This document shows, piece after piece, positions 21,194 through 60,002 of a DNA stretch of 64,000 bases. The notes under the pieces are model-generated. The model searched no databases, had not been told where the DNA came from, and saw nothing but the letters and a program-made list of their open reading frames with translations. Source of the stretch: Chrysemys picta bellii (Eukaryota). The stretch covers positions 1,178,001-1,242,000 of the forward strand of contig NC_088814.1 of assembly GCF_011386835.1 (NCBI RefSeq). Direction: 5' to 3'. Every line of letters starts with the position of its first letter. Position 1 is the first letter of the stretch. The translations under genes and the position numbers were made by a program.

Positions 21194-24100
21194 TCAATAG
21201 AGCTGATTCTTCAGCTGATGCAGAACCCCCAGCACGATGTCCCGCAGAGTCTGAGGAGAACAAGGAAGAGGCAGGATCAGTCACTCTGCGGGATGAAGAA
21301 ACATTCACCTTGGCAATGCCTCTGTGGGTTCCAGAACAGGCCTGGGAACTCCTTACAGAGGGGAATAAGTGTGTAGAAAGGCAGCTGGATAACAGTTGCG
21401 TCAGCCACGCACAGTGGTGTTTATGGGAACAAACCTGAGGGTGGGGGGTATATGGCTTCAGTACCTCAGTATTACTGGGAGTACAGGCCCTGCCAGCTTG
21501 GATCAGACCAAGGGTCAGTCCTGGCCAGCAGAACCAGCTGCTTTAGCGAGAGAGCCTAGGGCAAGGAGTGGTATGACTCAGGGAAGGTTCTCCTTAGCCC
21601 CCATCAGCTAGAGCCTCATCTATGCTCTGAAGCAGGAGGGTTTCTATCCCTCTCAAAGCTCGTGTTTGCTGGTCTCATGCTGGGGCTCTTGTTCGCCAGC
21701 TAAGTGCATCAGGGTCTCTCTCTGCTGAGAAAAGAACCCCACAGCAGCAAGTTTCAGAGCCTGGGTCAGGTAACTCGGGCTTGCAGAGCTTGCGCTCTGG
21801 GGCTCAAAATAGCAGAGTAGATGTCCCCACTCAGGCTAGAGCCTGGACTCTGAAACACTCCCCTCTGCAGGTTTGCAGAGCCTGGGCTCTGAGCCTCGCT
21901 GCTGCAGGGGGTTTTGCAGTGTAGATGTACCCTTGGGTTTGCCTGATCTCCTGTGGCAGACAGCACTACCCTGCCAGCTGCATGTCGGGGGAAAGTTTCT
22001 CCCTCTATTCATTTTGAATTTGCCACTTTCAATTTCACACACGGTCCCTTTGCTCATTATGAGACAGGGAGAACAGAAGTTCTCCATCTCCCTCCTCAGC
22101 ACCAGGCACTATTTTGCATCTCTTTATCATGTCCCCTGTTCTGCCTCTGGTAGACAGTCCCAGGCTTTCTGTGCCCCTAGTCGTTCTCGTCACTTGTCTC
22201 TGAACTGTCTACTTGTGCTTTGTCCTCTTTGAGATGGGGTGACGGGAACCGCATTCACTATCTCCATCCTGGTCTTTAAACCTCCTATCGTGCTTGGATT
22301 GCTGCCAGGTGCTGAACTGGCCCTGGCGCTGGTTAATTAGAGCCCAGTAAGGTGTCGGAATAGTTCAAGCCGTTCCCTCCAACGTGCATTGCTTTGCATT
22401 TGTATCTACTGTAGCTATCTGGCCCTATGCAGGCGCCTGCCCTGTGTTACTATGTGTGGCTCCTAGTTCTTACCTGTGGTTTACAATGCTCTTCAATCCA
22501 GCTGAAGACACAGGCTGAAAGTTCCTGAAAACTTGTTACCGAGATGGAGGCATTAAAGGACTGGAACAGTGAATCCATGATGCCTTGGAAAACATTAAAC
22601 TTGACTTGGTCAGAGACCTGGTCTTTCCCCTCATTTGGATTATCCTGATGAGCTTTCACAATCTGCTCATAGTTTCTGAAACAAACCAAAGAAACCTGGA
22701 TAAAACGGCAGGCTTGGGAAGCCGGCTCTGGCCTCAGACACTTTCCAAAGCTCTGTTTGATCTGTGAGAGAGACCAAAGATGTGCCGCGGAGTTTGCTTG
22801 TTTGTGTTAACTTTGCTTGTTAGGACCATAAGGCAACTCTCAGACTGGTTGTATGGTTAAGGTAGCAGGCTCTGGGCTTAAATTCCTCAAATTAAAAACC
22901 CTTGCTCAGCCCATGCCCCTTGCACTGTACTGGGATCTGTGTCAGATACAAACCACTCTGGGATGGAATTGCACAGGACAGAGGGGGAGAAAAAGGTGAG
23001 TATGGTTGTGTCTGCTGCAGTATGTGTAACACAGGGTGTCTGTCTCCCAGGCCCCTCGGGGTGGGAGATGTGTGACAAGTTGCTCCTTACACTTTCATGA
23101 TCTTCAAAGCTGTGACATCTTTCCTGAGTGTAGAAACTTCCTCCTCCTGCTTCTTCTTCTCCTTATGGAGGAACTGAATGTAGTCAATGGCTGAAAAGCA
23201 AAGGGAGGACGAGGATTTAGGACGCTCGAGACAGGTCACAGTGATGCCGCTCAGCAGGGGACAGGTCGAGCAGACACTGGGGCACCTGCAGGATTGATTC
23301 ATGGCCCTAGATTTCATCCCCACAGGCCTCATGCATCCAAACTGACCAGGAGCCAGGCTCCCCTGTGCCTCCTCTCCTCAGAGGGTCTCAGTGCTTCACA
23401 ACCGGCTCCTGGGAGGGGCAGCGAGGTGCTCTAGATCATATGCTAGCAGTGGCCAAGCTGGGAGGCATCTCAGCCTCCTAAGCCCTAGACAGTCTTCCAC
23501 CCTCAACCTAAGTGATTTTGATGCCTGTGAGCTGCAAGAAGTGGCTGACTGGAGGGTACGGGGGCTGGGCACCTGTAACAGTGTGCCTCCCTTGCACTCT
23601 AGGCTGATTGCACAAGTGTTACCCTCAGCAAGAGACCAGGGCAGTGTTAACCTGCAGAGCCAGCTGGGAGGGAGCAGACAACTCAGTGAGGCCTGGAACA
23701 AGGCACCTGCTGTTTTAGTTTTGAATGTCTGCAGGGAGGGTTTAACAGCTCAGAGGACTTTCCCCATCGAACCCCCATGAACGAGGTGGCTCCAATTCTG
23801 GCTGGCCAGTACCCCACTCAGTGACCAGAGGAGTACAGCCGTCCAGCACAGAAGCTATTTGTCACAGTTGTTAGGAATGCCAGCACAGGCCCCGAAATCA
23901 CTCCCCCCAGACTCACTTTTCTGCAGGACGATGGCTTTGCTCAGTTTCTGGGAGCCAATGGAGAAGTCCTGCTGCTGGCATGTGGGAACAATGGTCTGCA
24001 AGTCATCGTAGCCTTTCTGTGGGGGAACAGAGTGAAGTGACAGTGTGTTTTAGATTCAACAGCATGGGATGATGGCAGCTGGCTGGGTAGATGGTGGAAA

Positions 24101-27100
24101 GCTACAGCTCCCCCAGGTTGATACAAACCCCCTACAGCAGTGTTTCCCAAACTTGGGACGCCGCTTGTGTAGGGAAAGTCCCTGGCGGGCTGGGCCGGGT
24201 TGTTTACCTGCCCCGTCCGCAGGTTCGGCCGATCGCAGCTCCCACTGGCCGCGGTTTGCCGCTCCAGGCCAATGGGAGCTGCTGGAAGCAGCTCTGGCCG
24301 AGGGACATACTGGCCACCACTTCCCGCAGCTCCCATTGGCCTAGAGTGGCAAACCGCGGCCAGTGGGAGCCGCGATCAGCCGGACCTGTGGGACAGGGCA
24401 GGTAAACAAACCGGCCCGGTCTGCCAGGGGCTTTCCCTACACAAGCGGCACCCCAAGTTTGGGGGAACATGGAATTTAACAGCTAAATAAATAACACTAG
24501 GTGCTGGTGCTGTAGAATAATGGGTCCTCTGGGTCTGAGGTGAAAGGAAGGCGCTGTCTGAATTCTCTCCCTGCTAGATGCTCTGAGGTTACCTTGATGG
24601 CATCTCGTCTCTTCTGCTCAGCCTGGGTGTGGGCGCGTCTGCGCCGGTCCTTGTACGACTCTTTGTAGGTTTCCTGGTGATAATCGCTGTCTTCGTCATC
24701 TGCAGCGGAAGAATGGTTACCGTCAGCGCTGGGGGCACGTGGCAGCTCCCAGAGCCCAGGAAGCAGAGACAAAAACGGATACCTCCAGTTACTGAGGCAA
24801 CACAGAACCCACGCAGTGTCTGGACTGGGATCATTTAGACACCTGTGCCTGAGAACACCTCCCAGGGACACCACTTAGCTCCCAATTGGATGGACTAGCT
24901 CCAAACAGCTCTTCCAAAAGGGTGGGGCCAAAACACAGTAAAGATCTGCCTGTCCAAGGGCATCATGAATGAGCAGCTGGGGAAATTCATTATAGCAAAG
25001 GCCAATAACAAAGATACTAGGTGCCAACTGGGCCACCTGCTTCTCCTGCAGGTTGGGCCCTGGCTTGTCTAGGCAGGATTCTCACTAGCAGGGCTCTGCC
25101 GCATTACAGATTTCAAGAGGGACTGGGTGTCTAAGCTGAGATCCCTTCCGCAGAGGGGCCAACTTTTCAGCACTTCCTGGAATCAGGCCCCTTTAAGGTG
25201 TCTCAGAATGGGCATCCATCAGCACTCAAAAACCTCGGCCAAGAAGTTTCTTCAGCACTTCACTCCAGCTCTCCTCTGTTCTCCATTACCAGGAGAGTCT
25301 CATCAAACTGCCCTGCAGGAAGCCAGGACACCATCCTCCCTACCCAAGGGCAAGACTTATGCTCTAGCTGGCAGAGGAAGCTCTTGCAATCACAGTCTCT
25401 TACAGAACAGCTACCTAAGGAGAATGAGACTGAACAGGAATACGAGTGAGAGAGTGGGAAAAGCCCCTATTAACTGAAGTGCTGGAGAAGCTGGTGGAAC
25501 ATAGAGAAGGGACCATACCTGTATTGGGGACTGAGGAGGCACTGGTGGAGCCAATGCTGTTAGCTCGGGACACTATGCTTCCTTTCCTAGTGCTTTCCAC
25601 AAAGAGCGCTGAAAGAGAAAATACCACACCGTATTTCCCTAAGTCATGCAGGAGGCAGTGAGTGAGTGTCACTAACCCCCAGAGACACTGCAAACTGGGA
25701 CAGCCAAGGGATCAACTCTAAGAGGCAAGTCACAGGGCAACCAGCTCCAGGGATGAGCAGCTGTTGCAGGCCCAGTCAGTGTGCAGATAAGTACGATGAA
25801 TGCTGACCAGACGTGAAAGCCAACTAAAGCACAGCAATGAAACTCTAATATCCTTTGCACCCGGTTCCCTGTCTGTAAAATGGGGAAAATACATTCTGGG
25901 AGACTTGCAAAGTGCTTCAAGAGCCTCTCATTAAAGGAGCAAAGAATACATTGATAATCGCGACTGTGCTGCTCTTCCGATGAGGAGATGTTAGTCTGGC
26001 TTTAAAAGGCCAAAGGGTCTGATTAGAGACTCTGGATTTGGGCCAAATTTGACCAGATTGTCCCTCTGCTAACAGCATAAGCTAGAGCAAAGGACAAAAG
26101 TGACCAGGGCTCCTTGGCCCATTCAGTCAGCTGTGACCTGACAGAGTTTGGGAGAAGAGGACACACAGCTACTCACAGGGATCCAGTCCACTGTCACTAT
26201 ATGCAGAATCCACCTGGTGCGTTGTAGGATGAGCGAATTACAGCGTGCGGAAACGGGAAGAGAAGAGAGAAAAAGAAACCAACCAGTGAGTGAGGCAGTT
26301 TCCTCTTTAGTGCATTTGCTTTTTTGCGCAATCAACTATTGTGCCAACACGTGACAGCAAGTGGGAACAATGTGGGTGGTCCCATGAGCCCCCACACAAC
26401 ACATCCGCTTTCCAGAAAAACAATGCTGCCCAATTCCCTTGCAGGCTGAAACACGGGTTTGTTCTTCAGTTTAACAAGGCTGTGACTGCAGGATTGATCT
26501 GGTTACAGTTTTACTACACTTTAGTCTAGGAATACATGGTCAGATTTTCAAAAGCATATGCACATTGAGGACAACAGGAGAAGCTGAGTGTTGAGCAATT
26601 GTGAAAATCTGACCCTGGTTCCTGCACAGACTTTGGGCACTTATGGACACATAGTCAACACTTCCTCCCCCTTTTACGTTGTTATATTTATCTGAATGTT
26701 GAGACTGAATACAAGAAAAGACAAATGACCAGGCAGCTCTGCTCCAGGCATTCAGGACAAAACGTTCATAGAAAGTTAAAGCTCAGCCTCTGGCTATGAC
26801 TCTCAAGATACACTGTTTCCTGGATATGCTAAGCAGGAAACCTAAGTGCATTCAACAGCCAAGTCCTCTGCTTGGTTAGTCTCCCTCCATTGGCAGCAGT
26901 TATGTAAGGCCTCCCCCGAGGAACCAAGGATCAGATTTGTAAAGGTATTTAGCTACCTAAAGAAGCAGATAGGCACTTAGTGGCATACCGAAAAGTGCCT
27001 AAGAACCTAAATCCTGGGTCACACAAACTTCCATTGATTTGAGGTTGTGAGCCTTAGTTCCTTTGCAAAATCCCACTAGGCATCTAAACACCTTTACAAA

Positions 27101-28100
27101 TCTGGCCCGAAGTGTATTTAACTCCTTGGACCTACTTGAGAGATGTTTTCCCAAGACAGTCAAGATTTTGCAGTGACAGAAATGTAGAATTGTGGAATAA
27201 TCCACCCATATTGGATGGTTCCTCCCCAATCCCAGTTGCCCAGAGTTGGCTCGTGTCCGATGCAGGAGGGTTTCTGTCCCTTCCCAATGTCTGGGGGCGA
27301 TGGGCAGAGAGTAAGTCAGCGGTGGTATCTGATTCTCTTTATGCGGTAAAAGGCAAGATGCCCCAGGAGAGGCACCAGCCAGTGGCTTTGCGTCCAGTCA
27401 CATCCCCTCAAAAATCTGCCTCCTCTGGCTCCGAGCTGGGAACCTGCATGGTTGCAGGGAGGTTGGACACATGACCTGACCCCTGGCCCCATCCCTGATG
27501 TGACCCCAGGCCTGATCCCAACCCTGACCTGACCCCTGGCCCCATCCCTGATGTGACCCCAGGCCTGATCCCAACCCTGACCTGACCCCTGGCCCCATCC
27601 CTGATGTGACCCCAGGCCTGGCTCCATCCCTGATGTGACCCCAGGCCTGACCCCACTCCTGACCTGACCCCTGGCCCCATCCCTGATGTGACCCCAGGCC
27701 TGGCCCCAACCCTGGCCTGACCCCACTCCTGAGCTGACCCCTGGCCCCATCCCTGATGTGACCCCAGGCCTGGCCCCAACCCTGACCTGACCCCTGGCCC
27801 CATCCCTGACCTGACCCCTGACCCCATCCCCAGTCCTGACGTGACCCCACCTGACTTCTGCGCCCACAAGCCCCCGCCCTTGGGCTCCCCCAGCCCCGAC
27901 TCACCCTCCCACCAGGCCCCTGCGCCCGCTGTGACCCGGCTCCGGGCCTGGGGGGCGGAGCCCGGCGGGTGCCCGAGGGGGGTGTCGCCCTCTCCCGGGG
28001 AGAAGGGCCCCGCGGTGTGTCCCGCGCCGGCCGCCGTCCCGCCCCCGGGACTCACCTTCCCCCAGGGGTCTTCGGGCGAGGCGCCCGCCTGCTCCGCCAT
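21194..28100 (-). CDS. MLX: Max-like protein X (bHLH-Zip partner of ChREBP/MondoA), 8 coding exons, 245 aa (beta-type isoform)
   Basis: Exons 28100-28056, 26213-26177, 25608-25519, 24699-24593, 24016-23917, 23190-23091, 22675-22474 and 21250-21194 (TGA) total 738 nt. Start MAEQAGASPEDPWGK; basic-HLH RRRAHTQAEQKRRDAIKKGYDDLQ; end TLRDIVLGVLHQLKNQLY. Confidence 0.97.
24138..24467. mobile_element. Near-fully palindromic MITE (hAT-like termini) in MLX intron 4
   Basis: The left arm CAGTGTTTCCCAAACTTGGGACGCCGCTTGTGTAGGGAAAG..TTTACCTGCC..CCAATGGGAGCTG is mirrored by the right arm CAGCTCCCATTGG..GGCAGGTAAACAAA..CTTTCCCTACACAAGCGGCACCCCAAGTTTGGG. Confidence 0.88.
26928..27108. mobile_element. Short MITE-like element with ~33-bp imperfect TIRs
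   Basis: GGATCAGATTTGTAAAGGTATTTAGCTACCTAA on the left pairs with CTAGGCATCTAAACACCTTTACAAATCTGGCCC on the right. Confidence 0.7.
27470..27850. repeat. 53-bp (2 x ~26-bp) tandem repeat in MLX intron 1
   Basis: CATCCCTGATGTGACCCCAGGCCTG...CCTGACCTGACCCCTGGCCC recurs at 27490, 27543 and 27596, followed by variant copies. Confidence 0.9.
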
Positions 28101-28430
28101 CTTCCCGTGCACTCGGGTCATGTGACCTCCCCGCATCAGCCAATCACAGCGTCCGACCATTGCCGGGAAAGGAGCTTCCGGGAGACGCCTGCCGCGGGGA
28201 CTGCTGGGAGTTGTAGTTCCACCGCGGGGACTGATGGGAGCTGAAGTGTGTCCCGGGCCCTGGCCCGCCTGAGCCACCAGGGGGCGCCGTGACACTGAGG
28301 CTCCTGCAGCGGGAGGCGCCGCGGTCTCAGCACGGGGGGGGGGCCGCGAACACCGAGACAGGGGGGGCTCGCGGGGCGGGGGGGGCGCAAAGTGGCAACC
28401 ACGTGTCAGAGTTGCGAACCGGGACACATT
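27880..28430 (-). promoter_or_regulatory. MLX CpG-island promoter
   Basis: CpG-dense around exon 1, with GGTCATGTGACC (~28116-28127), CCAAT (~28140), GGGAGTTGTAGT (ACTACAACTCCC, ZNF143/THAP11-associated motif, ~28206-28217) and E-box CACGTG (~28400). Confidence 0.7.
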
Positions 28431-28470
28431 GGTGGGGGACTGGCCAGGAACACCTGGGGGAGCTGGGCCT

Positions 28471-31400
28471 GTGACCTCACATGGCCCCATTACCTGTCCA
28501 GTGACCCCAGATGACCCCATTCGCTGCCCTGGGTCTGGGGGTGACCCCATTAGCTGTCCAGTGACCTCAGATGACCCCATTCCAAGCCCTAGGACTTAAC
28601 CTGTGACCTCAGATGACCCCATTACCTGTCTAGTAACCTCAGATGACCCCATTTGCTCCCCTGAATCTGGGGCTTGACCTCAGATGACCCCATTACCTGG
28701 CCAGTGACCTCAGATGACCCCATTCCTTGTCCTGGGTCTAGGCCTGTGACCTCAGATGACCCCCATTACTTATCCAGTGACCTCAGATGACCCCATTCCC
28801 TGCCCTGAGTCTGGACCTGTGACCTGAGATGACCCCATTACTTCTTCAGTGGCCTCAGATGACCACATTCCCTGCTCTCAGAGTGGGCCTGTGACCTCAG
28901 ATGACCCCCATTACCTGGCCAGTGACCTCAGATGACCCCATTTGCTCCCCTGGATCTGGGTCTGTGACCTCAGATGACCCCATTACCTGGCCAGTGACCT
29001 CAGGTGACCCCATTCCCTGCCCTAGGTCTGGACCTGTTACCTCAGACAACCCCATTACTTCTTCAGTGACCTCAGATGACCCCCCTTCCCTGCTCTTGGG
29101 GTGGGTCTTGACCTCAGATGACCCAATTACTTGTCCAGTGACCCCATATGACCCCATTTGCTCTCCTGGGTTTGCGACTGTGACCTCAGATAACCCCATT
29201 ACTTCTACAGTGTCCTCAGATGACCCCATTTGCTCTCCTGGGTCTGTGACTGTAACCTCAAATGACCCCATTACCTGTCCAGTGACCTCAGATGACCCCA
29301 TTCCTTGTCCTGGGTCTAGGCCTGTGACCTCAGATGACCCCCCCCATTACTTATCCAGTGATCTCAGATGACCCCATTTGCTCCCCTGGGTCTTTCTGTT
29401 ACCTCAGATAACCCCATTACTTGTTCACTGACCTCAGATGACCCCATTCCCTGCCCTGGGTCTGGACCTGTGACCTGAGATGACCCCATTACTTCTTCAG
29501 TGGCCTCAGATGACCCCATTCCCTGCTCTCAGGGTGGGCCCGTGACCTCAGATGACCCCATTACTTGGCCAGTGACCCCAGATGACCCCATTTGCTCCCC
29601 TGGGTCTGGGTCTGTGACCTCAGATGACCCCATTATCTGTCCAGTGACCCAAGATGACCCCATTCCAAGCCCTAGGAGTGGCTCTGTGACCTCAGATAAC
29701 CCCATTTCTTGTCCAGTGACCCCAGATGACCCCATTTGCTCTCCTGGGTCTGTGCCTGTGACCTCAGATAACCCCATTACTTGTCCAGTGACCCCAAATG
29801 ACCCCATTTCTTGCTCTGGGTCTTGACCTCAGATGACCCCATTACTTATTCAGTGTCCTCAGATGACCCCATTACTTGTCCAGTGAGCTCAGATGACCCC
29901 CATTCCCTGCCCTGGGTCTGGGGCTTGACCTCAGATGACCCCATTACTTGGCCAGTGACCCCAGATGACCCCATTTCGTGCTCTGGGTCTGTGTCTTGAC
30001 CTCAGATGACCCCATTACTTATTCAGTGTCCTCAGATGACCCCATTACTTGTCCAGTGAGCTCAGATGACCCCATTTGCTCTCCTGGGTCTGTGTCTGTG
30101 AACTCAGATAACCCCATTACTTGTCCAGTGACCCCCAGAGGACCCCATTTCGTGCTCTGGGTCTGAGTCTTGACCTCAGATGACCCCATTACTTATTCAG
30201 TGACCCCCAGATGACCCCATTTGCTCTTCTGGGGCTGGGGCTGTGACCTCAGATAACCCCATTACTTCTTCAGTGTCCTCAGATGACCCCATTACTTGTC
30301 CAGTGACCCCAGATGACCCCATTTGCTCTCCTGGGTCTGTGTCTGTGACCTCAGATAACCCCCTTACTTCTTCAGTGACCTCAGATGACCCCATTCCCTG
30401 CCCCGGGTTCGGGGCTTGACCTCAGATAACCCCATTTCTTGTCCAGTGACCCTAGATGACCCCATTTGCTCTCCTGGGTCTGTGCCTGTGACCTCAGATA
30501 ACCCCATTACTTCTTCAGTGTCCTCAGATGACCCCATTACTTGTCCAGTGACCCCAGATGACCCCATTTGCTCTCCTGGGTCTGTGTCTGTGACCTCAGA
30601 TAACCCCATTACTTCTTCAGTGACCTCAGATGACCCCCATTCCCTGCCCTGGGTCTGGGGCTTGACCTCAGATGACCCCATTACTTGTCCAGTGACCTCA
30701 GATGACCCCATTTGCTCTCCTGGGTCTGTGTCTGTGACCTCAGATAACCCCATTACTTGTCCAGTGACCCCAGAGGACCCCATTTCGTGCTCTGGGTCTG
30801 AGTCTTGACCTCAGATGACCCCATTACTTATTCAGTGACCCCCAGATGACCCCATTTGCTCTTCTGGGGCTGGGGCTGTGACCTCAGATAACCCCATTAC
30901 TTCTTCAGTGTCCTCAGATGACCCCATTACTTGTCCAGTGACCCCAGATGACCCCATTTGCTCTCCTGGGTCTGTGTCTGTGACCTCAGATAACCCCCTT
31001 ACTTCTTCAGTGACCTCAGATGACCCCCATTCCCTGCCCTGGGTCTGGGGCTTGACCTCAGATAACCCCATTTCTTCTCCAGTGACCCCAGATGACCCCA
31101 TTTGCTCTCCTGGGTCTGTGCCTGTGACCTCAGATAACCCCATTACTTGTCCAGTGACCCCAGATGACCCCATTTGCTCTCCTGGGTCTGTGCCTGTGAC
31201 CTCAGATAACCCCATTACTTGTCCAGTGAGCTCAGATGACCCCATTCCCTGCCCCGGGTTCGGGGCTTGACCTCAGATAACCCCATTTCTTGTCCAGTGA
31301 CCCTAGATGACCCCATTTGCTCTCCTGGGTCTGTGCCTGTGACCTCAGATAACCCCATTACTTCTTCAGTGTCCTCAGATGACCCCATTACTTGTCCAGT

Positions 31401-32600
31401 GACCCCAGATGACCCCATTTGCTCTCCTGGGTCTGTGTCTGTGACCTCAGATAACCCCATTACTTCTTCAGTGACCTCAGATGACCCCCATTCCCTGCCC
31501 TGGGTCTGGGGCTTGACCTCAGATGACCCCATTACTTGTCCAGTGACCTCAGATGACCCCATTTGCTCTCCTGGGTCTGTGTCTGTGACCTCAGATAACC
31601 CCATTACTTGTCCAGTGACCCCAGAGGACCCCATTTCGTGCTCTGGGTCTGAGTCTTGACCTCAGATGACCCCATTACTTATTCAGTGACCCCCAGATGA
31701 CCCCATTTGCTCTTCTGGGGCTGGGGCTGTGACCTCAGATAACCCCATTACTTCTTCAGTGTCCTCAGATGACCCCATTACTTGTCCAGTGAGCTCAGAT
31801 GACCCCATTCCCTGCCCTGGGTTCGGGGCTTGACCTCAGATAACCCCATTTCTTGTCCAGTGACCCTAGATGACCCCATTTTCTCTCCTGGGTCTGTGCC
31901 TGTGACCTCAGATAACCCCATTACTTCTTCAGTGTCCTCAGATGACCCCATTACTTGTCCAGTGACCCCAGATGACCCCATTTGCTCTCCTGGGTCTGTG
32001 TCTGTGACCTCAGATAACCCCATTACTTCTTCAGTGACCTCAGATAACCCCCATTCCCTGCCCTGGGTCTGGGGCTTGACCTCAGATGACCCCATTACTT
32101 GTCCAGTGACCTCAGATGACCCCATTTGCTCTCCTGGGTCTGTGTCTGTGAACTCAGATAACCCCATTACTTGTCCAGTGACCCCAGAGGACCCCATTTC
32201 GTGCTCTGGGTCTGAGTCTTGACCTCAGATGACCCCATTACTTATTCAGTGACCCCCAGATGACCCCATTTGCTCTTCTGGGGCTGGGGCTGTGACCTCA
32301 GATAACCCCATTACTTCTTCAGTGTCCTCAGATGACCCCATTACTTGTCCAGTGACCCCAGATGACCCCATTTGCTCTCCTGGGTCTGTGTCTGTGACCT
32401 CAGATAACCCCATTACTTCTTCAGTGACCTCAGATGACCCCCATTCCCTGCCCTGGGTCTGGGGCTTGACCTCAGATGACCCCATTCCTTGCCCTGGATC
32501 TAGGCCTGTGACCTCAGATAACCCCATTCCCTGCCCAGTGGCCACAGATGAACCCATCCCAGCCCTAGGTCTGGGTCTGTGACCTCATATGACCCCCATT
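28471..32600 (-). repeat. ~4.1-kb minisatellite (~27-33-bp units) with a DR4 core GGGTCA-TCTG-AGGTCA and higher-order blocks
   Basis: The + strand unit is approximately GTGACCTCAGATGACCCCATT(ACTTGTCCA/TGCTCTCCTGGGTCTGT). The marker GAGGACCCC recurs at 30138, 30773, 31624 and 32187. Confidence 0.95.
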
Positions 32601-33362
32601 CCCTTTCCTTGGCGTGGCTCCTTGACCCCCAGGTAACATCCCCTCCCTTTGCTGGCCCACCCGCAAGACCCCCAATCTCTGCTGTGGGCCTGCCCTCCCC
32701 ACCCCCTCAAGGGTTCTCCCATACCAAGCCTGTACCTGTGACCTCCGTTGACTCATCTCCCTGCCCTGTGCCTATGACTGCAGGCGATTTCACACACACA
32801 CAGCCCCCACCAGGGCCTGGGTCCAGGCCCATGAGCCTAGGTGACGTCACTCCCTGCGCTGGGCCTGGGAGCCCCATCGGCTCAGACCCACCCCTTCCAG
32901 CCCCTCAGATCATGAGATTTTCATGTTACACACAATCAACCATTGAGGGTTTCAGTTTTTTTCTTTTCTGTGCCTTCTGGATTTGATCCTTAGGGTCATG
33001 TTTCCTACTTGTCTTCCCAACCAGGAGTGCCAGGCATGTATTGGTTTACATGGAAGCTGAGAGTCGCCTGTAATCACAGGACTCCAGGAGCTGAGGCTTT
33101 GATATGAGGCTCCTGATGAAACTAAGAGTTCGCCACACTGTGCAGTTGGCAGGAGCCAGACTTGGCCAGGAGAGCTCTGAGCCCCAGGGCTGGTTATTGG
33201 CAGGGGCAGGACAGTCCCTGGTCTAGGCCTGTAGAAAATCCCCAGGGTCTGCATCCAGAGAGCCAGAGAATCTAAAGTTCACTGGGGACATCCCTGCAAA
33301 ATCCCTGGCCTCAGGAAGTGGGAATCCCGGGGGCAGTATCAGGCAGGAAGCAGAGTCACCTG

Positions 33363-33580
33363 GGGGATGGGGGCCAGCACAGGAAGCGGGGTCCCTGGGG
33401 GGGGTGTCACAGGGGCCAGCACAGGAAGCGGGGTCCCTGGGGGGGGTGTCACAGGGGCCAGCACAGGAAGCGGGGTCCCTGGGGGGGGGGGTCACAGGGG
33501 ACAGCACTGGAAGCGGGGTCCCTGGGGGGGGGTCACAGGGGACAGCACTGGAAGCGGGGTCCCTGGGGGGGTCACAGGGT
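33363..33580. repeat. ~33-bp G-rich minisatellite
   Basis: GGAAGCGGGGTCCCTGGGGGGGGTGTCACAGGGGCCAGCACA, about 6 copies. Confidence 0.9.
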
Positions 33581-39789: not shown

Positions 39790-41991
39790 TCACATGCAGC
39801 GGGCTGCCTGCAAACACTTCTGGGGATGCACGTCCGTCTGCGGGCCGTACAGCTTCTCCGCCCACCTCTCAAAGGCCGTCACCATCTGCTTCACCACCTC
39901 ATCGAAGAACAGGTTGGCCAAGTGAGAATGCAGGATGGACTTGAACTCAAAGGAGACCTGGCAAGGAAACACAGATCTTAACAGGGGGCTGCCCTGGGAT
40001 CTCTTTGCCCGATTGCAGCTGCCCTCGACTTCTTGCAGAGGGGCAGCCTGGCAGAACCGCAGGCCGCAGCGTCACTGGGGTGGCCTGTGTAAAGCATTCA
40101 CTAGCCACACACGGTGACCCCCCCAGGAAAGAAGGACTGTTCTGTGCAGGGCCAAGCCTGCCTCTTCCACCCCCGGCCCAGCCTGCCTCGGGGATTGGCC
40201 CAGACGGGAATACTCACATAGAAGTCTAACGTGCAGGTGTCTGGCTGCCCCGGCAGCCCCGGGCTAAACCGCCACAGCGTCTCCAGGTGGCTGAAGATGC
40301 GGCTGTCGTTGCATACAGCCTGCAGGAGGAAAGGGGGCTCGCGTCAGTTTCACCCCACAAGGCTCTCAGCTGATTTCAATCCACCCACACCCAGGAGTGC
40401 CCAGCAGCCAGTGACACTGAGCCCGGGCTGCTGGAGCCAGTAAGAACCGGGCTCCCTGTTCACACACGAGTTCACATCTGCGTGAGTCTGTGAACGTGGA
40501 ACCGGGCTACACAGGCCGTGTGGTAACAGGCGAGCCCCTAGCCGTAGAGAGGCTGGGGCTGCCAGTTCACTTGGGCAGAGGTTCCTTATCCGGCACCCGT
40601 CCCAAGCACTGACTTATTAGTGTGACGTCCGCCTCTCCTCAGCCCTGATCTGCCTGGAACTGGACCCACACAGCTCAGCACCAGATACAACCCTGGTTTT
40701 GTCTGGCTCCTTGGAGCCCGACTGCTGCCTCAGGGGGGGGAGAGGAGCTGCATCTCACACACAGACGCTTTTCGAGAACGGGGCAGACGGGGGTCACAGC
40801 CACAAGCACGAGGCCTGGGACCCACAGGAACCTCCCAGAATGTCTGGCCCTGGGATCCCCACAGGCCCCTAGGCTCCCTGGTGGCCCCTTACCCGGATCT
40901 GGTGCTGGGGAGTCAGGGAGATTTCAGAGACGTAGCGCTCCACGAGGGGCGCGAAGCCGACCTCCAGCTCTGCCCGCGTGAGCCCTTTGCGGTAGGACAA
41001 GACCTTGGAGCTCTTGCACCACGGCACAAAGAGCTGGTAGCTCTCCACGTTGGCCACCACGTTGTACATCTGCTCCATCGAGTAGCTGGAAGAGAGGGGA
41101 GACAAGCCGCCTGTGAGCGGGTGCCGGGCGGGTGACGCGAGACAGGCAGCACCTGGCGCGGGGGTCATCAGGCTGGGAACTCAGCCACCGACCTGCACCC
41201 TCCCCCCTTCCCTGGGCAACAGGCTCCTGCCACTGCCCTCTGCCCACCGGAGACAACTCCCACTCCCAGCCCCTTGGCCAGGTCCCCCCGGCCGAGCCGC
41301 CGAGACCCCCTTGGAGCCGCTGAACACCCCTGCCCGATGGGCGACTCTGGGCTCCACACTCACCCCAGCACTCGCGCTTCCGCGTACTCCATCCGCTTGC
41401 CACCCAGCAGAGGGGCTGCCAGGTTCAGGAAGGTCCGTGCCGGGGGCTGCAGCACCTGCGTCGGGGTGACGGGAGGTCGCTTGGGGGCCTGTGGCGTGGC
41501 CAGGATCCCACAGGAACTTAAATGCCTGAAACACAGAAGGGCGGTTACAGGGGTGAGCATCAGGGCACAGCCCGGGGGCCGCGCAGCCCCTTCAGCGTGG
41601 AACCCCCCCCACGGACAGCTCAGCCCCATGGGGTCCGGCTGGGCTCAGCCCCGGGGATTCAGATCCACATCCCCCCCGACCCCCAACCCTGGGCCCCAGC
41701 GCAGGACTGGGGCTCTTCCGGCGCCCACGGTGCCCCCGCCGGCTGGGGGGCAGGACACGAGAGGACGGGCCCGGGGGTCCCACCCGAATCCGGACCCAGA
41801 GTTGGAGCCACGTAGGGCGGGCAGGGGCCGCCCCATCCCCGGGGCCCGGGACCAGGCGGCGGCCCCCGCTCCCCCCGGCCCGGTCTCGTCCGGTCCGGTC
41901 CTTACCGAGTCCCGTCCCCGGGGCGCGGGCGGCCCCCAGCTCCCCGCAGCGCCCGCAGGAACGCGGCTCCCCGGCTGCTGCTCCCGGCCAT
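39790..41991 (-). CDS. Coenzyme Q-binding protein COQ10-like (START/SRPBCC fold), mitochondrial, 5 exons, 236 aa; probable third paralog
   Basis: Exons 41991-41906, 41525-41364, 41085-40893, 40319-40218 and 39957-39790 (TGA) total 711 nt with an intact frame. Motifs: [74 protein letters not shown]. The N-terminus is an Arg/Ala-rich presequence-like segment. AATAAA on the - strand at 39488-39493. The family call is secure; A versus B orthology is not, so no symbol is given. Confidence 0.93.
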
Positions 41992-44059: not shown

Positions 44060-44455
44060 GACCTATAAGGGAAGATTGAAAAAAACTGGGTTTGTTTAGT
44101 CTGGAGAAGAGAAGACTGAGAGGGGACTTGATAACAGTTTTCAAGTACATAAAAGGCTGTTACAAGGAGGACGGAGAAGAATTGTTCTTAACCTCTCAGG
44201 ATAGGACAAGAAGCAATGGGCTTAAATTGCAGCAAGGGCAGTTTAGGTCGGACATTAGGAAAAACTTCCTGTCAGGGTGGTTAAGCACTGGAATAAATTG
44301 CCCAGGGAGGTGGTGGAATCTCCATCATTGGGGATTTTTAAGAGCAGGTTGGACAAACACCTGCCAGGGCTGGTCTAGATAATACTCAGTCCTGCCTTGA
44401 GTGCAGGGGACTGGGCTCGATGACCTCTCGAGGTCCCTGCCAGTTCTGTGATCAG
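44060..44455 (+). mobile_element. CR1 LINE 3' end
   Basis: The translation [51 protein letters not shown] is the typical CR1 ORF2 tail. It is followed by a CR1-type 3'UTR (GAGGTCCCTGCCAGTTCTGTGAT). Confidence 0.92.
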
Positions 44456-55084: not shown

Positions 55085-56500
55085 CCCAGCCCCCCGCCTC
55101 ACTGCCCTGTCCTCACCACCCCCCGCCACACTGCCCCCAGCCTCCCTCCCCACCCCACTGCCCCCCATCCCCAGCACCCCCTGCCCTCACCACCCCCCGC
55201 CACACTGCTCCCAGCCCCCCATCCCCACCACACTGCCTCGCCCCCCATCCCCATCCCCCCCTGCCCTCACCACCCCCTGCCACACTGCTCCCAGCCCCCC
55301 TCCCCTGCCATCCCCATCCCCCCCTGCCCTCACCACCCCCCGCCACACTGCCCCCAGCCCCCCTCCCCACCCCACTGCCCCCCATCCCCAGCACCCCCTG
55401 CCCTCACCACCCCCCGCCACACTGCCCCCAGCCCCCATCCCCTGCCATCCCCATCCCCCCCTGCCCTCACCACCCCCTGCCACACTGCTCCCAGCCCCCC
55501 TCCCCTGCCATCCCCATCCCCCCCTGCCCTCACCACCCCCCGCCACACTGCCCCCAGCCCCCCTCCCCACCCCACTGCCCCCCATCCCCATCCCCCCCTG
55601 CCCTCACCACCCCCCGCCACACTGCCCCCAGCCCCCCTCCCCACCCCACTGCCCCCCATCCCCAGCACCTCCTGCCCTCACCACCCCCACCCCACTGCTC
55701 CCAGCCCCCCCATCCCCACCACACTGCCCCCCATCCCCAGCACCCCCTGCCCTCACCACCCTCTGCTGCACTGCTCCCAGCCCCCCTCCCCCAGCCCCCT
55801 GCCCCCATTCCCAGCACCCCCTGCCCTCACCACCCTCTGCCACACTGCTCCCAGCCCCCCTCCCCTGACATCCCCATCCCCCCCTGCCCTCACCACCCCC
55901 CGCCACACTGCCCCCAGCCCCCCTCCCACCCCACTGCCCCCCATCCCCATCCCCCCCTGCCCTCACCACCCCCCGCCACACTGCCCCCAGCCCCCCTCCC
56001 CACCCCACTGCCCCCCATCCCCAGCACCTCCTGCCCTCACCACCCCCACCCCACTGCTCCCAGCCCCCCCATCCCCACCACACTGCCCCCCATCCCAGCA
56101 CCCCCTGCCCTCACCACCTTCTGCCACAGTGCTCCCAGCCCGCTCCCCCACCACACTGCCCCGCCCCCCCATCCCCATCACTCCGTCCTCACCACCCCAT
56201 CCCCCCCTGCCCTCACCACCTTCTGCCACACTGCCCCCAGCCCCCCCTCCCACCCCACTGCCCCCCATCCCTAGCACCTCCTGCCCTCACCACCCCCACC
56301 CCACTGCTCCCAGCCCCCCCATCCCACCACACTGCCCCGCCCCCCCAGCCCCAGCACCCCCTGCCCTCACCACCCCCCGCCACACTGCTCCCAGCCCCCC
56401 TCCCACCCCACTGCCCCCCATCCCCAGCCCCCCCTGCCCTCACCACCCCCCGCCACACTGCTCCCAGCCCCTCTCCCCACTGCTCCCGTCCCCAGCCCCA
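55085..56500. repeat. ~1.4-kb C-rich minisatellite (G-rich on the COASY sense strand) filling COASY intron 1
   Basis: The core CTGCCCTCACCACCCCCCGCCACACTGCCCCCAGCC recurs at irregular ~50-70-bp spacing. It produces the spurious 568-aa Pro-rich ORF. Confidence 0.95.
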
Positions 56501-57110
56501 CGCACCCGAACCAGCCCCGGCGGCGCTGCCAGCCCGGGGGCGTGGGGGGGGGGGGGAGCCCGCGGGGGATGCTGGGTAACGCCCATACCCCAGCGGGGGC
56601 GGGGCCCGCCGTCACTCACCGAGCGGCCGGGCCAGGGGCCGCCTCTCGCCGCCGCTCCGCGCCTGACCCGGAAGCGCTCCCCGCTGCCCGCCGGAAGTGT
56701 GTCATCGCCATTTTTTAAATCTCCGTTTAAATTTCAATAACAACTTTATCGACTTTGCGGGCGACCTCTGACCCCGGACTCTCGCGAGAGGGCGCGTGGA
56801 AGCGGGCTCACGAGGGAGAGTTTGGGGCGGGGCTCCTGGAGGGGGCGGGGCTAATGAGCGAGGTGGGGAGGGGCTCATAGAGGGGGCGGGGCTAAGGGAG
56901 AGGTTGGGGCGGGGCTCATGGAGGGGGCGCTAAAGAGATAGGTGGGGCGGGGCACTTGGGGGCGGGGCTAAGGAGAGAGGTGGGGGCGGGAATCCTGGAG
57001 GGGGAGGGGCTAAGGGGAGAGGTGGGGCAGAGCTCCTGTAGGGGGCGGGACTACGGGGAGAAGTGGGCGGGGCTCCTGGAGGGGGCGGAGCTAAGGGGAG
57101 AGGTGCCCCC
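56500..57110 (-). promoter_or_regulatory. COASY CpG-island promoter with GC-box array
   Basis: Two CCGGAAG ETS sites (~56667, ~56691), YY1-type CGCCATTTT (~56707), palindromic TCTCGCGAGA (56780-56789) and about ten GGGCGG boxes in a tandem array at 56822-57100. Confidence 0.7.
56620..56760 (-). other. COASY: Probable non-coding first exon of COASY
   Basis: Donor CG|GTGAGT at 56620/56619 lies within a CpG island. The ATG exon begins with the acceptor TTCCAG|GTACCATG at 54980. The exon's 5' boundary is approximate. Confidence 0.7.
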
Positions 57111-59796: not shown

Positions 59797-60002
59797 NNNN
59801 NNNNNNNNNNNNNNNNNNNNNNNNNNNNNNNNNNNNNNNNNNNNNNNNNNNNNNNNNNNNNNNNNNNNNNNNNNNNNNNNNNNNNNNNNNNNNNNNNNNN
59901 NNNNNNNNNNNNNNNNNNNNNNNNNNNNNNNNNNNNNNNNNNNNNNNNNNNNNNNNNNNNNNNNNNNNNNNNNNNNNNNNNNNNNNNNNNNNNNNNNNNN
60001 NN
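59797..60002. other. Assembly gap (N run), next to a (GT)n/(GCGT)n microsatellite
   Basis: A run of N bases. Confidence 1.

Follow-up and report, generated by a model that had tools for sequence, protein, structure and literature searches.

DR4 sites in a tandem array upstream of turtle MLX: probable by-product of an old minisatellite

Introduction

Directly upstream of the turtle MLX gene, within the 64-kb window considered here (the whole stretch of DNA analysed, 64,000 nucleotides), lies a tandem array in which nuclear-receptor half-sites recur as direct repeats with a spacing of four nucleotides (DR4). The question that this locus raises is whether the array was built, or has been kept, as a response element, as the original prediction had it in proposing a repeat-built super-response element or receptor sink, or whether the DR4 sites merely accompany the amplification of a repeat. 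The evidence presented below leads us to consider it probable that the array represents a compound minisatellite that is old in the turtle lineage, and that DR4 is a by-product of the repeat and not a maintained response element. Neither DR4 minisatellites nor the array upstream of MLX were the subject of any paper retrieved in a literature search.

Results

The array occupies positions 28472–32624 and comprises 116 units, counted by anchoring on a 20-nt core, which are arranged head-to-tail in a single orientation. Spacings of 30 bp (53 times), 42 bp (41), 41 bp (10) and 31 bp (7) occur between units, and TRF reports a 72-bp dimer in 53.6 copies, which consists of a 30-bp and a 42-bp unit, each carrying the module AATGGGGTCATCTG-AGGTCA. 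The MLX-proximal part (28472–30098, minus strand; units 1–45) exhibits 30/42-bp alternation and more diverged units, and the distal part (30099–32624, minus strand; units 46–116) contains higher-order duplications at offsets of 636, 851 and 2050 bp. The same-orientation, head-to-tail units within the range of about 10–100 bp, the variant repeats with several linker subtypes, and the recent higher-order copies of 95.7–97.6% identity, as would be produced by unequal exchange, are typical of a minisatellite or VNTR. The proximal junction at 28471 is identical in a contig from a second individual (27862–28695), and the distal junction is confirmed by contigs spanning 32457–33096.

As had been predicted, the array is nearly devoid of CpG (13 observed versus 279 expected; observed/expected ratio 0.05), because the unit consensus contains none; it is also strongly strand-asymmetric (GC skew about −0.25). 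About nine other GC-rich minisatellites are present in the window. Searches of the genome with a 401-bp array query and with the 20-nt core (at most one mismatch) matched the MLX locus only, save one unrelated C5 site, and an origin of the exact unit from a transposon or dispersed repeat was rejected on this ground. Likewise, a 10-bp period as the source of the 30-mer was set aside, since it is backed solely by the TGACCYCA duplication and the lag-10 autocorrelation is weak (0.317 versus ∼0.28). Bins of the distal part are poorly covered in the close relatives C and D, and array contigs are present in an RNA run of a relative.

The predicted core GGGTCA-TCTG-AGGTCA and its named variants are real: on the minus strand, i.e. 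that of MLX, the array contains 35 copies of the core, 26 of GGGTTA-TCTG-AGGTCA and 12 of GGGTCA-TCTG-GGGTCA. With a loose definition of DR4 (RGKTYA-N4-RGKTYA), 87 sites are found on the minus strand of the array, none on its plus strand and a single one in the remaining 59.9 kb of the window; 57 sites satisfy the strict definition (RGGTCA-N4-RGGTCA). The expectation of well over 100 units is borne out for the units as such (116), of which, however, only 87 (75%) are DR4-competent; the spacer is TCTG in 104 of the 116. The density exceeds the genome-wide average (24,810 loose sites in 2.37 Gb) by ∼2000-fold, a figure that has to be read with an effective sample size of one, the sites being copies of a single amplified module and not independent events.

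The units represent good, sequence-perfect DR4 elements, for which receptor binding in vitro is plausible; the half-sites of the GGGTTA-type unit agree, but for one base, with those of the gel-shift probe used for LXR at SREBP-1c (PMC3909891). The original prediction had also asked whether variation spares half-sites and spacer. Per-position identity within the array amounts to 0.96–0.98 for the spacer, 0.93–0.99 for the flanking CCATT and 0.85–0.99 for the half-sites, so that spacer and flank, reaching 0.98 and 0.99, equal the half-sites and conservation is not half-site-specific. Among 13 distinct half-site variant types listed, five retain RGKTYA (∼38%, versus ∼21% by our own estimate for random change), which gives no clear sign that variation would spare the DR4 sites.

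The identification of the downstream gene as MLX was confirmed by a homology search yielding named MLX matches at 91–97% identity. Pfam did not match single MLX exons, because introns split the HLH domain; a PDB search for the identity of the gene gave no match, and an atlas search gave a weak HLH lead only. The ATG is located at 28100 on the minus strand, and the first array core lies 372 bp upstream, in accord with the anticipated ∼370 bp. As read from the sequence, the coding part of exon 1 (minus strand) extends from the ATG (28100–28098) over 15 codons to 28056 and is followed by a GT donor at 28055. Exon 2 starts near 26210, and further exon-bearing open stretches on the same strand, within 22453–26210, are found at 25418–25711, 24500–24874, 23090–23377 and 22453–22806. 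A spliced contig joining exons 1 and 2 was found in run X25. The CpG-island promoter together with exon 1 (27850–28470, minus strand; GC content 0.74, CpG observed/expected 0.69) adjoins the array. It contains what we take to be two ACTACAAC-TCCCAGCAG-like boxes (28247–28231 and 28217–28201), as well as a presumed ATTGG box (28144–28140) and a presumed AGGTCACATGACCC (28128–28115).

Inside intron 1 of MLX resides a second GGGTCA-rich tandem array (27472–27848, minus strand) with a 29/53-bp period, and Macrochelys possesses an array at the matching position (L024:10307–10529). Comparison of the intron-1 array with the upstream array yields a score of 28 versus a shuffle maximum of 24, which is only suggestive of kinship, and its half-sites would be 6 nt apart, versus 4 in the upstream array. 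On the other side, the upstream neighbour is a COQ10-like gene (39790–41180, minus strand; Polyketide_cyc/START, Pfam PF03364, E-value 8.9e-15), with its coding end ∼7 kb away from the array. The order COQ10-like gene, array, MLX is the same in Chelydra and Macrochelys.

Orthologous arrays with alignable flanks were identified in Chelydra serpentina (about 3.0 kb, 94 units, dominant unit 61 bp) and Macrochelys suwanniensis (about 1.6 kb, 50 units). At least two deep lineages of turtles have the array in the same place, with flank identity of only 79–89%, and the number of units (116, 94 and 50) varies more than two-fold between species. A comparison of TRF consensus units shows that the 72-mers of the window species and Chelydra differ at ∼4 of 72 positions. 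The sequence common to all three arrays is GGGTCA-TCTG-AGG, not a full DR4: a core of 13–17 nt is at least 90% conserved in each, whereas the second half-site varies in its final three bases. In both snapping turtles this half-site is mostly AGGACA or AGGTAA, and DR4-competent units amount to 8 of 94 (9%) in Chelydra and 5 of 50 (10%) in Macrochelys. Most units of the chelydrid arrays thus do not have both half-sites, and the proposal that the array owes its origin or its maintenance to a role as response element finds no support in this comparison. At the MLX loci of chicken, a lacertid lizard and a rattlesnake the array is absent, as is its core, with one 3-mismatch site in chicken as the sole match; the Logan contigs L027–L029 likewise represent compact loci devoid of the array. 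The further sequence clusters inspected comprised birds, squamates and mammals only.

At no fewer than four other loci (C5 at 16.48, 17.48 and 24.80 Mb; C18 at 22.07 Mb), the same genome contains a 143–144-bp satellite, which accounts for the majority of the clustered strict DR4 pairs genome-wide (246 versus 7 in the control). Its module, GGGGTCATCT-RRGGTCA, is that of the MLX array, and each unit carries two strict DR4 sites. The satellite carries 81–100 strict sites per 10 kb and holds more of these than the MLX array does, and the notion that a DR4 array is special to MLX is therefore not supported. The two repeats have in common an exact block of 15 nt as well as ACAAGYAAT(T)GGGGTCAT, and local alignment of satellite and MLX unit gives z-scores of 6.4–7.9 against shuffles, although repetition within each of the two sequences inflates these values. 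The MLX array hence shares the GGGGTCAT module beyond chance, but differs from this satellite family in period (72 versus 143 bp) and in that its unit is confined to the MLX locus. The satellite is furthermore distinct in its AT-rich filler and in extending over tens of kb at several loci that do not adjoin MLX.

Discussion

Since most DR4 sites are missing from the snapping-turtle arrays and the same motif is present in unrelated satellites, the DR4 sites at MLX appear to be a by-product of the repeat. The array lies in the intergenic DNA between the COQ10-like gene and the CpG-island promoter of MLX, and its module is one of a broader family of GGGGTCAT-based tandem repeats in the genome. 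We infer the following mutational path. The DR4 geometry would result from a 10-bp direct duplication of TGRGGTCA within the module. Unequal exchange and conversion would enlarge and shrink the array and alter its mix of units, so that each lineage would have amplified its own variants, the window species units of the AGGTCA and GGGTTA types and the snapping turtles those of the AGGACA and AGGTAA types. The DR4 content would accordingly be fixed by whichever variant was amplified, and a dedicated receptor function would probably be absent. Four observations bear on this view from the other side: (i) the fixed position and the conservation of the core would agree with constraint on the core as well, (ii) perfect DR4 elements lie beside an active promoter, and AGGACA half-sites are present in candidate thyroid response elements (PMC3340398), such that receptors could still bind the arrays of all three turtles, (iii) the consensus 72-mers of the window species and Chelydra differ at so few positions, and (iv) an RNA run of a relative contains contigs of the array.

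An explanation along the first of these lines, which we regard as unlikely but worth consideration, is that some factor recognizes, in each of the three turtles, what is conserved of the unit (a CATCTG E-box that overlaps with a GGGTCA half-site, both inside AATGGGGTCATCTGAGG), and that the array serves them all as an enhancer, boundary or spacer element of the MLX promoter independently of DR4. The conserved core next to a second half-site that diverges in its final three bases, the persistence of the array in diverging flanks, and the second GGGTCA-rich array that the window and Macrochelys both have beyond exon 1 would agree with such an element. Concerted evolution by itself could keep the core constant, however, and the module also occurs in satellites unconnected with MLX, the binding factor is hypothetical, and the more than two-fold difference in unit number among species fits poorly.

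Somewhat more doubtful is that the array of the window lineage acts as a working DR4 platform, where RXR, together with TR or LXR, binds many units and renders MLX responsive to thyroid hormone or oxysterols, tuned by unit number. TR prefers half-sites with a TG extension, and both half-sites of the unit have one. The 87 matching units all share the orientation of the gene and start 372 bp from its ATG, the likeness to the SREBP-1c probe points the same way, and promoter VNTRs with transcription-factor sites provide a precedent for the tuning of expression (TRIB3, PMC7425993; CDH2, PMC12064536). Yet DR4 competence is lacking from most units of the orthologous chelydrid arrays, conservation within the array extends beyond the half-sites, the module recurs throughout satellites at loci unrelated to MLX, and the MLX promoter resembles a self-sufficient housekeeping CpG island. 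The receptor-sink version fails on quantity, the array contributing a negligible 87 of 24,810 loose (0.35%) and 57 of 2,527 strict (2.3%) sites of the genome. It is tempting, though decidedly speculative and in our opinion improbable, to go further and to propose that amplification of the AGGTCA and GGGTTA types turned a neutral, inherited minisatellite into a landing pad for TR:RXR or LXR:RXR at the MLX promoter, which would give this lineage a new hormonal or sterol input to the ChREBP/MondoA-MLX glucose-sensing axis that snapping turtles lack.

There is little to suggest that the array matters instead as a transcribed repeat, i.e. as an upstream or read-through transcript, or as a G-rich RNA or R-loop former near the promoter. 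Run X25, which is RNA as judged from its spliced contig, holds seven contigs within the array and a further one at 32850–33068 with a depth of 3.5, versus 35.6 for exon 1, and the strand asymmetry would suit such a role. However, almost every other RNA-like run of the species is nearly free of array words, the depth of contigs in repeats adds up over all copies, the contigs reveal neither strand nor ends, and weak intergenic signal is commonplace. Finally, it is scarcely credible that the array is a coding repeat, given that 20 of the 115 spacings between units are not divisible by three, every frame is broken and Pfam finds no match, despite unit lengths in multiples of three and open stretches of 140–158 codons on both strands (the coding reading was rejected on the broken frames and the Pfam result), or an assembly artefact, given that both junctions recur in independent individuals and species and the array is found in two other assemblies (Chelydra and Macrochelys).

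If the reading as a minisatellite is right, the locus represents a cautionary case, showing that 87 textbook response elements next to a metabolically relevant gene can arise from the simple amplification of one module. It further documents a minisatellite that distant lineages of turtles have kept in place, with its core, despite turnover of its unit mix, and a satellite family whose units are based on direct repeats of nuclear-receptor-like type. If, on the other hand, the units do function as DR4 elements, the window lineage and the snapping turtles would constitute a natural experiment, with a DR4-rich and a DR4-poor array at one promoter, and this contrast could serve to probe how the number of tandem sites affects a hormone response.

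Promoter-proximal VNTRs with transcription-factor sites are exemplified by the INS 5' VNTR. Another is the 33-bp VNTR in the promoter of human TRIB3, which comprises 1–5 units, has a demonstrated effect on expression, and repeats a segment that other mammals carry in single copy, as a conserved regulatory element (PMC7425993). The MLX array resembles it in lying a few hundred bases upstream of its gene, in having a recognizable factor site in each unit and in a copy number that is labile over evolutionary time, here among species. Unlike the TRIB3 VNTR, however, it is far larger (116 versus 1–5 units), would have a merely conjectural effect on expression, and lacks an outgroup counterpart, the absence of its core from the chicken, lacertid and rattlesnake loci setting it apart from repeats derived from a conserved single-copy regulatory element. 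The VNTR in intron 1 of human CDH2, with 24 units carrying steroid-receptor, RBPJ and ZEB1 sites, is supported by binding data and has been proposed to act as a binding hub (PMC12064536). Its units contain nuclear-receptor response elements, as those of the MLX array putatively do, but the steroid-receptor sites there are inverted repeats, and the VNTR is intronic and human-specific, whereas the candidate DR4 sites at MLX belong to an array common to distant turtles. Natural DR4 elements, such as the LXR element of SREBP-1c (PMC3909891) and DR4 thyroid response elements (PMC3340398), occur in single or few copies and were validated by binding and reporter assays. The MLX array shares with them the GGGTTA, GGGTCA and AGGTCA half-sites, the 4-nt spacing and the direct orientation, and differs in presenting 87 clonal candidate copies, recognized by their sequence.

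Results

The stretch at 28472–32624 is a head-to-tail tandem array for which TRF yields a 72-bp period and 53.6 copies. With the 20-nt plus-strand core TGACCTCAGATGACCCCATT as anchor, 116 units are identified, and the predominance of 30-bp (53) and 42-bp (41) spacings over those of 41 bp (10) and 31 bp (7) marks the 72-bp period as a 30+42 dimer. On the minus strand, that is, the strand of MLX, the core reads GGGTCA-TCTG-AGGTCA, and degenerate DR4 sites (RGKTYA-N4-RGKTYA, the response-element type of LXR:RXR and TR:RXR) occur 87 times on this strand, never on the plus strand, and once in the remainder of the 64-kb window. The DR4 tandem array of the original prediction is thus real, and its named core variants are present (GGGTCA-TCTG-AGGTCA, 35; GGGTTA-TCTG-AGGTCA, 26; GGGTCA-TCTG-GGGTCA, 12), as are the near absence of CpG (13 observed versus 279 expected) and the start ∼370 bp from the ATG (372 bp to the first core); 'well over 100 units' holds for the units but not for DR4-competent cores. 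CpG is absent from the unit consensus, the 13 cases being located in a few variant linkers which were afterwards copied. A coding repeat was rejected, as 20 unit spacings that are not multiples of three break all frames; open stretches in the array yielded no Pfam match.

Per-position identity across units is 0.85–0.99 in the half-sites, 0.96–0.98 in the 4-nt spacer and 0.93–0.99 in the following CCATT, while the linkers exhibit 0.75–0.89 compared with high values throughout the 20-nt core. The spacer sequence carries little weight in DR4 recognition. Since spacer and CCATT are as fixed as the half-sites, conservation is not focused on the latter, and the proposed check for variation sparing them thus revealed no half-site-specific constraint. 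The most diverged units are those closest to MLX, and the distal half contains duplicate copies offset by 636, 851 and 2050 bp (95.7–97.6% identity), which are the mark of recent unequal exchange. Both array junctions are reproduced with zero differences in contigs from a second sample labelled as the same species, and are likewise present in two relatives differing by ∼1–2% in the flanks. Poor contig coverage of the distal higher-order part in these relatives is consistent with species-specific turnover, although little can be concluded from such gaps. In a further relative, an RNA run yielded contigs inside the array and at 32850–33068, at about a tenth of exon 1 depth; the array is nearly missing from almost all other RNA-like runs.

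Orthologous arrays with the same flanks are present in Chelydra serpentina (L023; ∼3.0 kb) and Macrochelys suwanniensis (L024; ∼1.6 kb). The window locus aligns with the snapping turtle locus at 79–89% identity and in identical gene order, which identifies the window as turtle DNA. When all three arrays are anchored on the common 17-mer AATGGGGTCATCTGAGG, 87 of 116 units (75%) are DR4-competent in the window species, versus 8 of 94 (9%) in Chelydra and 5 of 50 (10%) in Macrochelys. The dominant snapping turtle unit comprises 61 bp, and in these two species the second half-site is mostly AGGACA (37 Chelydra and 16 Macrochelys units) or AGGTAA (30 and 15). Units with AGGTCA and with AGGACA occur in all three species, so that different inherited variants were amplified in each lineage. 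GGGTCA-TCTG-AGG is at least 90% conserved in all three arrays, but conservation does not extend to the final three positions of the second half-site. Neither an array nor any DR4 occurs at MLX in chicken, a lacertid lizard or a rattlesnake.

The array is located between a COQ10-like gene (PF03364; 39790–41991), which directly precedes MLX in this order also in both snapping turtles, and a 620-bp CpG island (GC 0.74, CpG O/E 0.69) containing MLX exon 1 (ATG at 28100, minus strand). The last large exon matches named MLX proteins at 91–97% identity, and an RNA contig of a relative splices exon 1 to an exon at ∼26210. By eye, we recognised housekeeping-type promoter boxes in the island (28115–28247, minus strand): an ATTGG (CCAAT) box and two ACTACAAC/TTCAG-CTCCCAGCAG-like boxes which we take to be ZNF143/SBS-like. 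AGGTCACATGACCC, 15 bp ahead of the ATG, places a TCACATGA E-box between inverted AGGTCA-type half-sites. MLX intron 1 harbors a GGGTCA-rich tandem array of 29/53-bp period (27472–27848) with a positional counterpart in Macrochelys (L024:10307–10529); in these two species, arrays of similar flavour thus flank exon 1 on both sides. A CoaE (COASY) gene adjoins MLX in the bird-like contig L027, and the genes called at the chicken locus (L025) include no COQ10-like one.

About nine further GC-rich minisatellites lie within the window. A C-rich compound minisatellite of 1.4 kb (55105–56480; periods 15, 63, 74, 137 and 359 bp) has as its neighbour a 41-bp G-rich array (56814–57105). Just past the distal flank, a 42-bp repeat (33370–33571; 4.8 copies, 96% identity) looks young. 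The short element at 33050–33100 is a very high-copy interspersed repeat, with contig depth of ∼1600–1970 in three DNA runs versus ∼20 in the flanks and many differing loose ends; contigs also show a form without 32922–33068. An open stretch at 44080–44379 (plus strand), for which Pfam gave no match, presumably carries a CR1-type reverse-transcriptase tail, and a 206-N run (59797–60002) is an assembly gap or masked.

Across the 2.37-Gb genome we counted 24,810 loose DR4 sites (control, 31,876; MLX array, 87) and 2,527 strict ones (RGGTCA-N4-RGGTCA; control, 2,704; MLX array, 57). Strict pairs 8–38 nt apart number 246 versus 7 in the control, and most belong to a 143–144-bp satellite on contig C5 at 16.48 Mb (C5:16483300–16492000, L030) and 17.48 Mb (C5:17476900–17492000, L031), with more arrays at 24.80 Mb (C5:24798216–24799284) and on contig C18 at 22.07 Mb (C18:22068242–22075010). 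The GGGGTCAT module is present four times per unit, together with two strict DR4 direct repeats, and higher orders span 287 and 431 bp. Two 10-kb samples hold 100 and 81 strict sites, each exceeding the entire MLX array, and the satellite accounts for a sizeable fraction of the genome's strict sites. It is identical to the MLX unit over a 15-nt block and bears additional resemblance to it (z 6.4–7.9 versus shuffles, inflated by internal repetition in both sequences). DR4-type direct repeats thus characterise a repeat lineage of this genome and are not specific to MLX.

Discussion

We consider it probable that the array, which fits the definition of a minisatellite, is a (nearly) neutral compound minisatellite. 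Ongoing unequal exchange and conversion would keep it in existence, and the receptor-like DR4 sites would arise as its by-product. What neutrality accounts for least well is that the array and its core have persisted for so long. The conserved core overlaps a CATCTG E-box, and a putative role independent of DR4 appears unlikely, if conceivable.

That the array might serve as a working DR4 platform in the window lineage we regard as quite improbable. The array does not pass two tests that a maintained DR4 element should, both half-sites being retained in few orthologous units and half-site-specific constraint being absent from the window array. Judged from sequence, in vitro receptor binding of array units is plausible: both half-sites of the GGGTTA-type unit match the SREBP-1c LXR probe except for one base (PMC3909891), and AGGACA half-sites are listed among candidate thyroid response elements (PMC3340398), for which reason we keep such a platform in consideration. 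The proposed receptor sink is dismissed, since the array holds too little of the genome's DR4 sites (0.35% loose, 2.3% strict).

Our literature search turned up no paper describing this array. Promoter-proximal or intronic VNTRs with factor sites are already known as a class, with those of TRIB3 (PMC7425993) and CDH2 (including steroid-receptor sites; PMC12064536) tuning expression.
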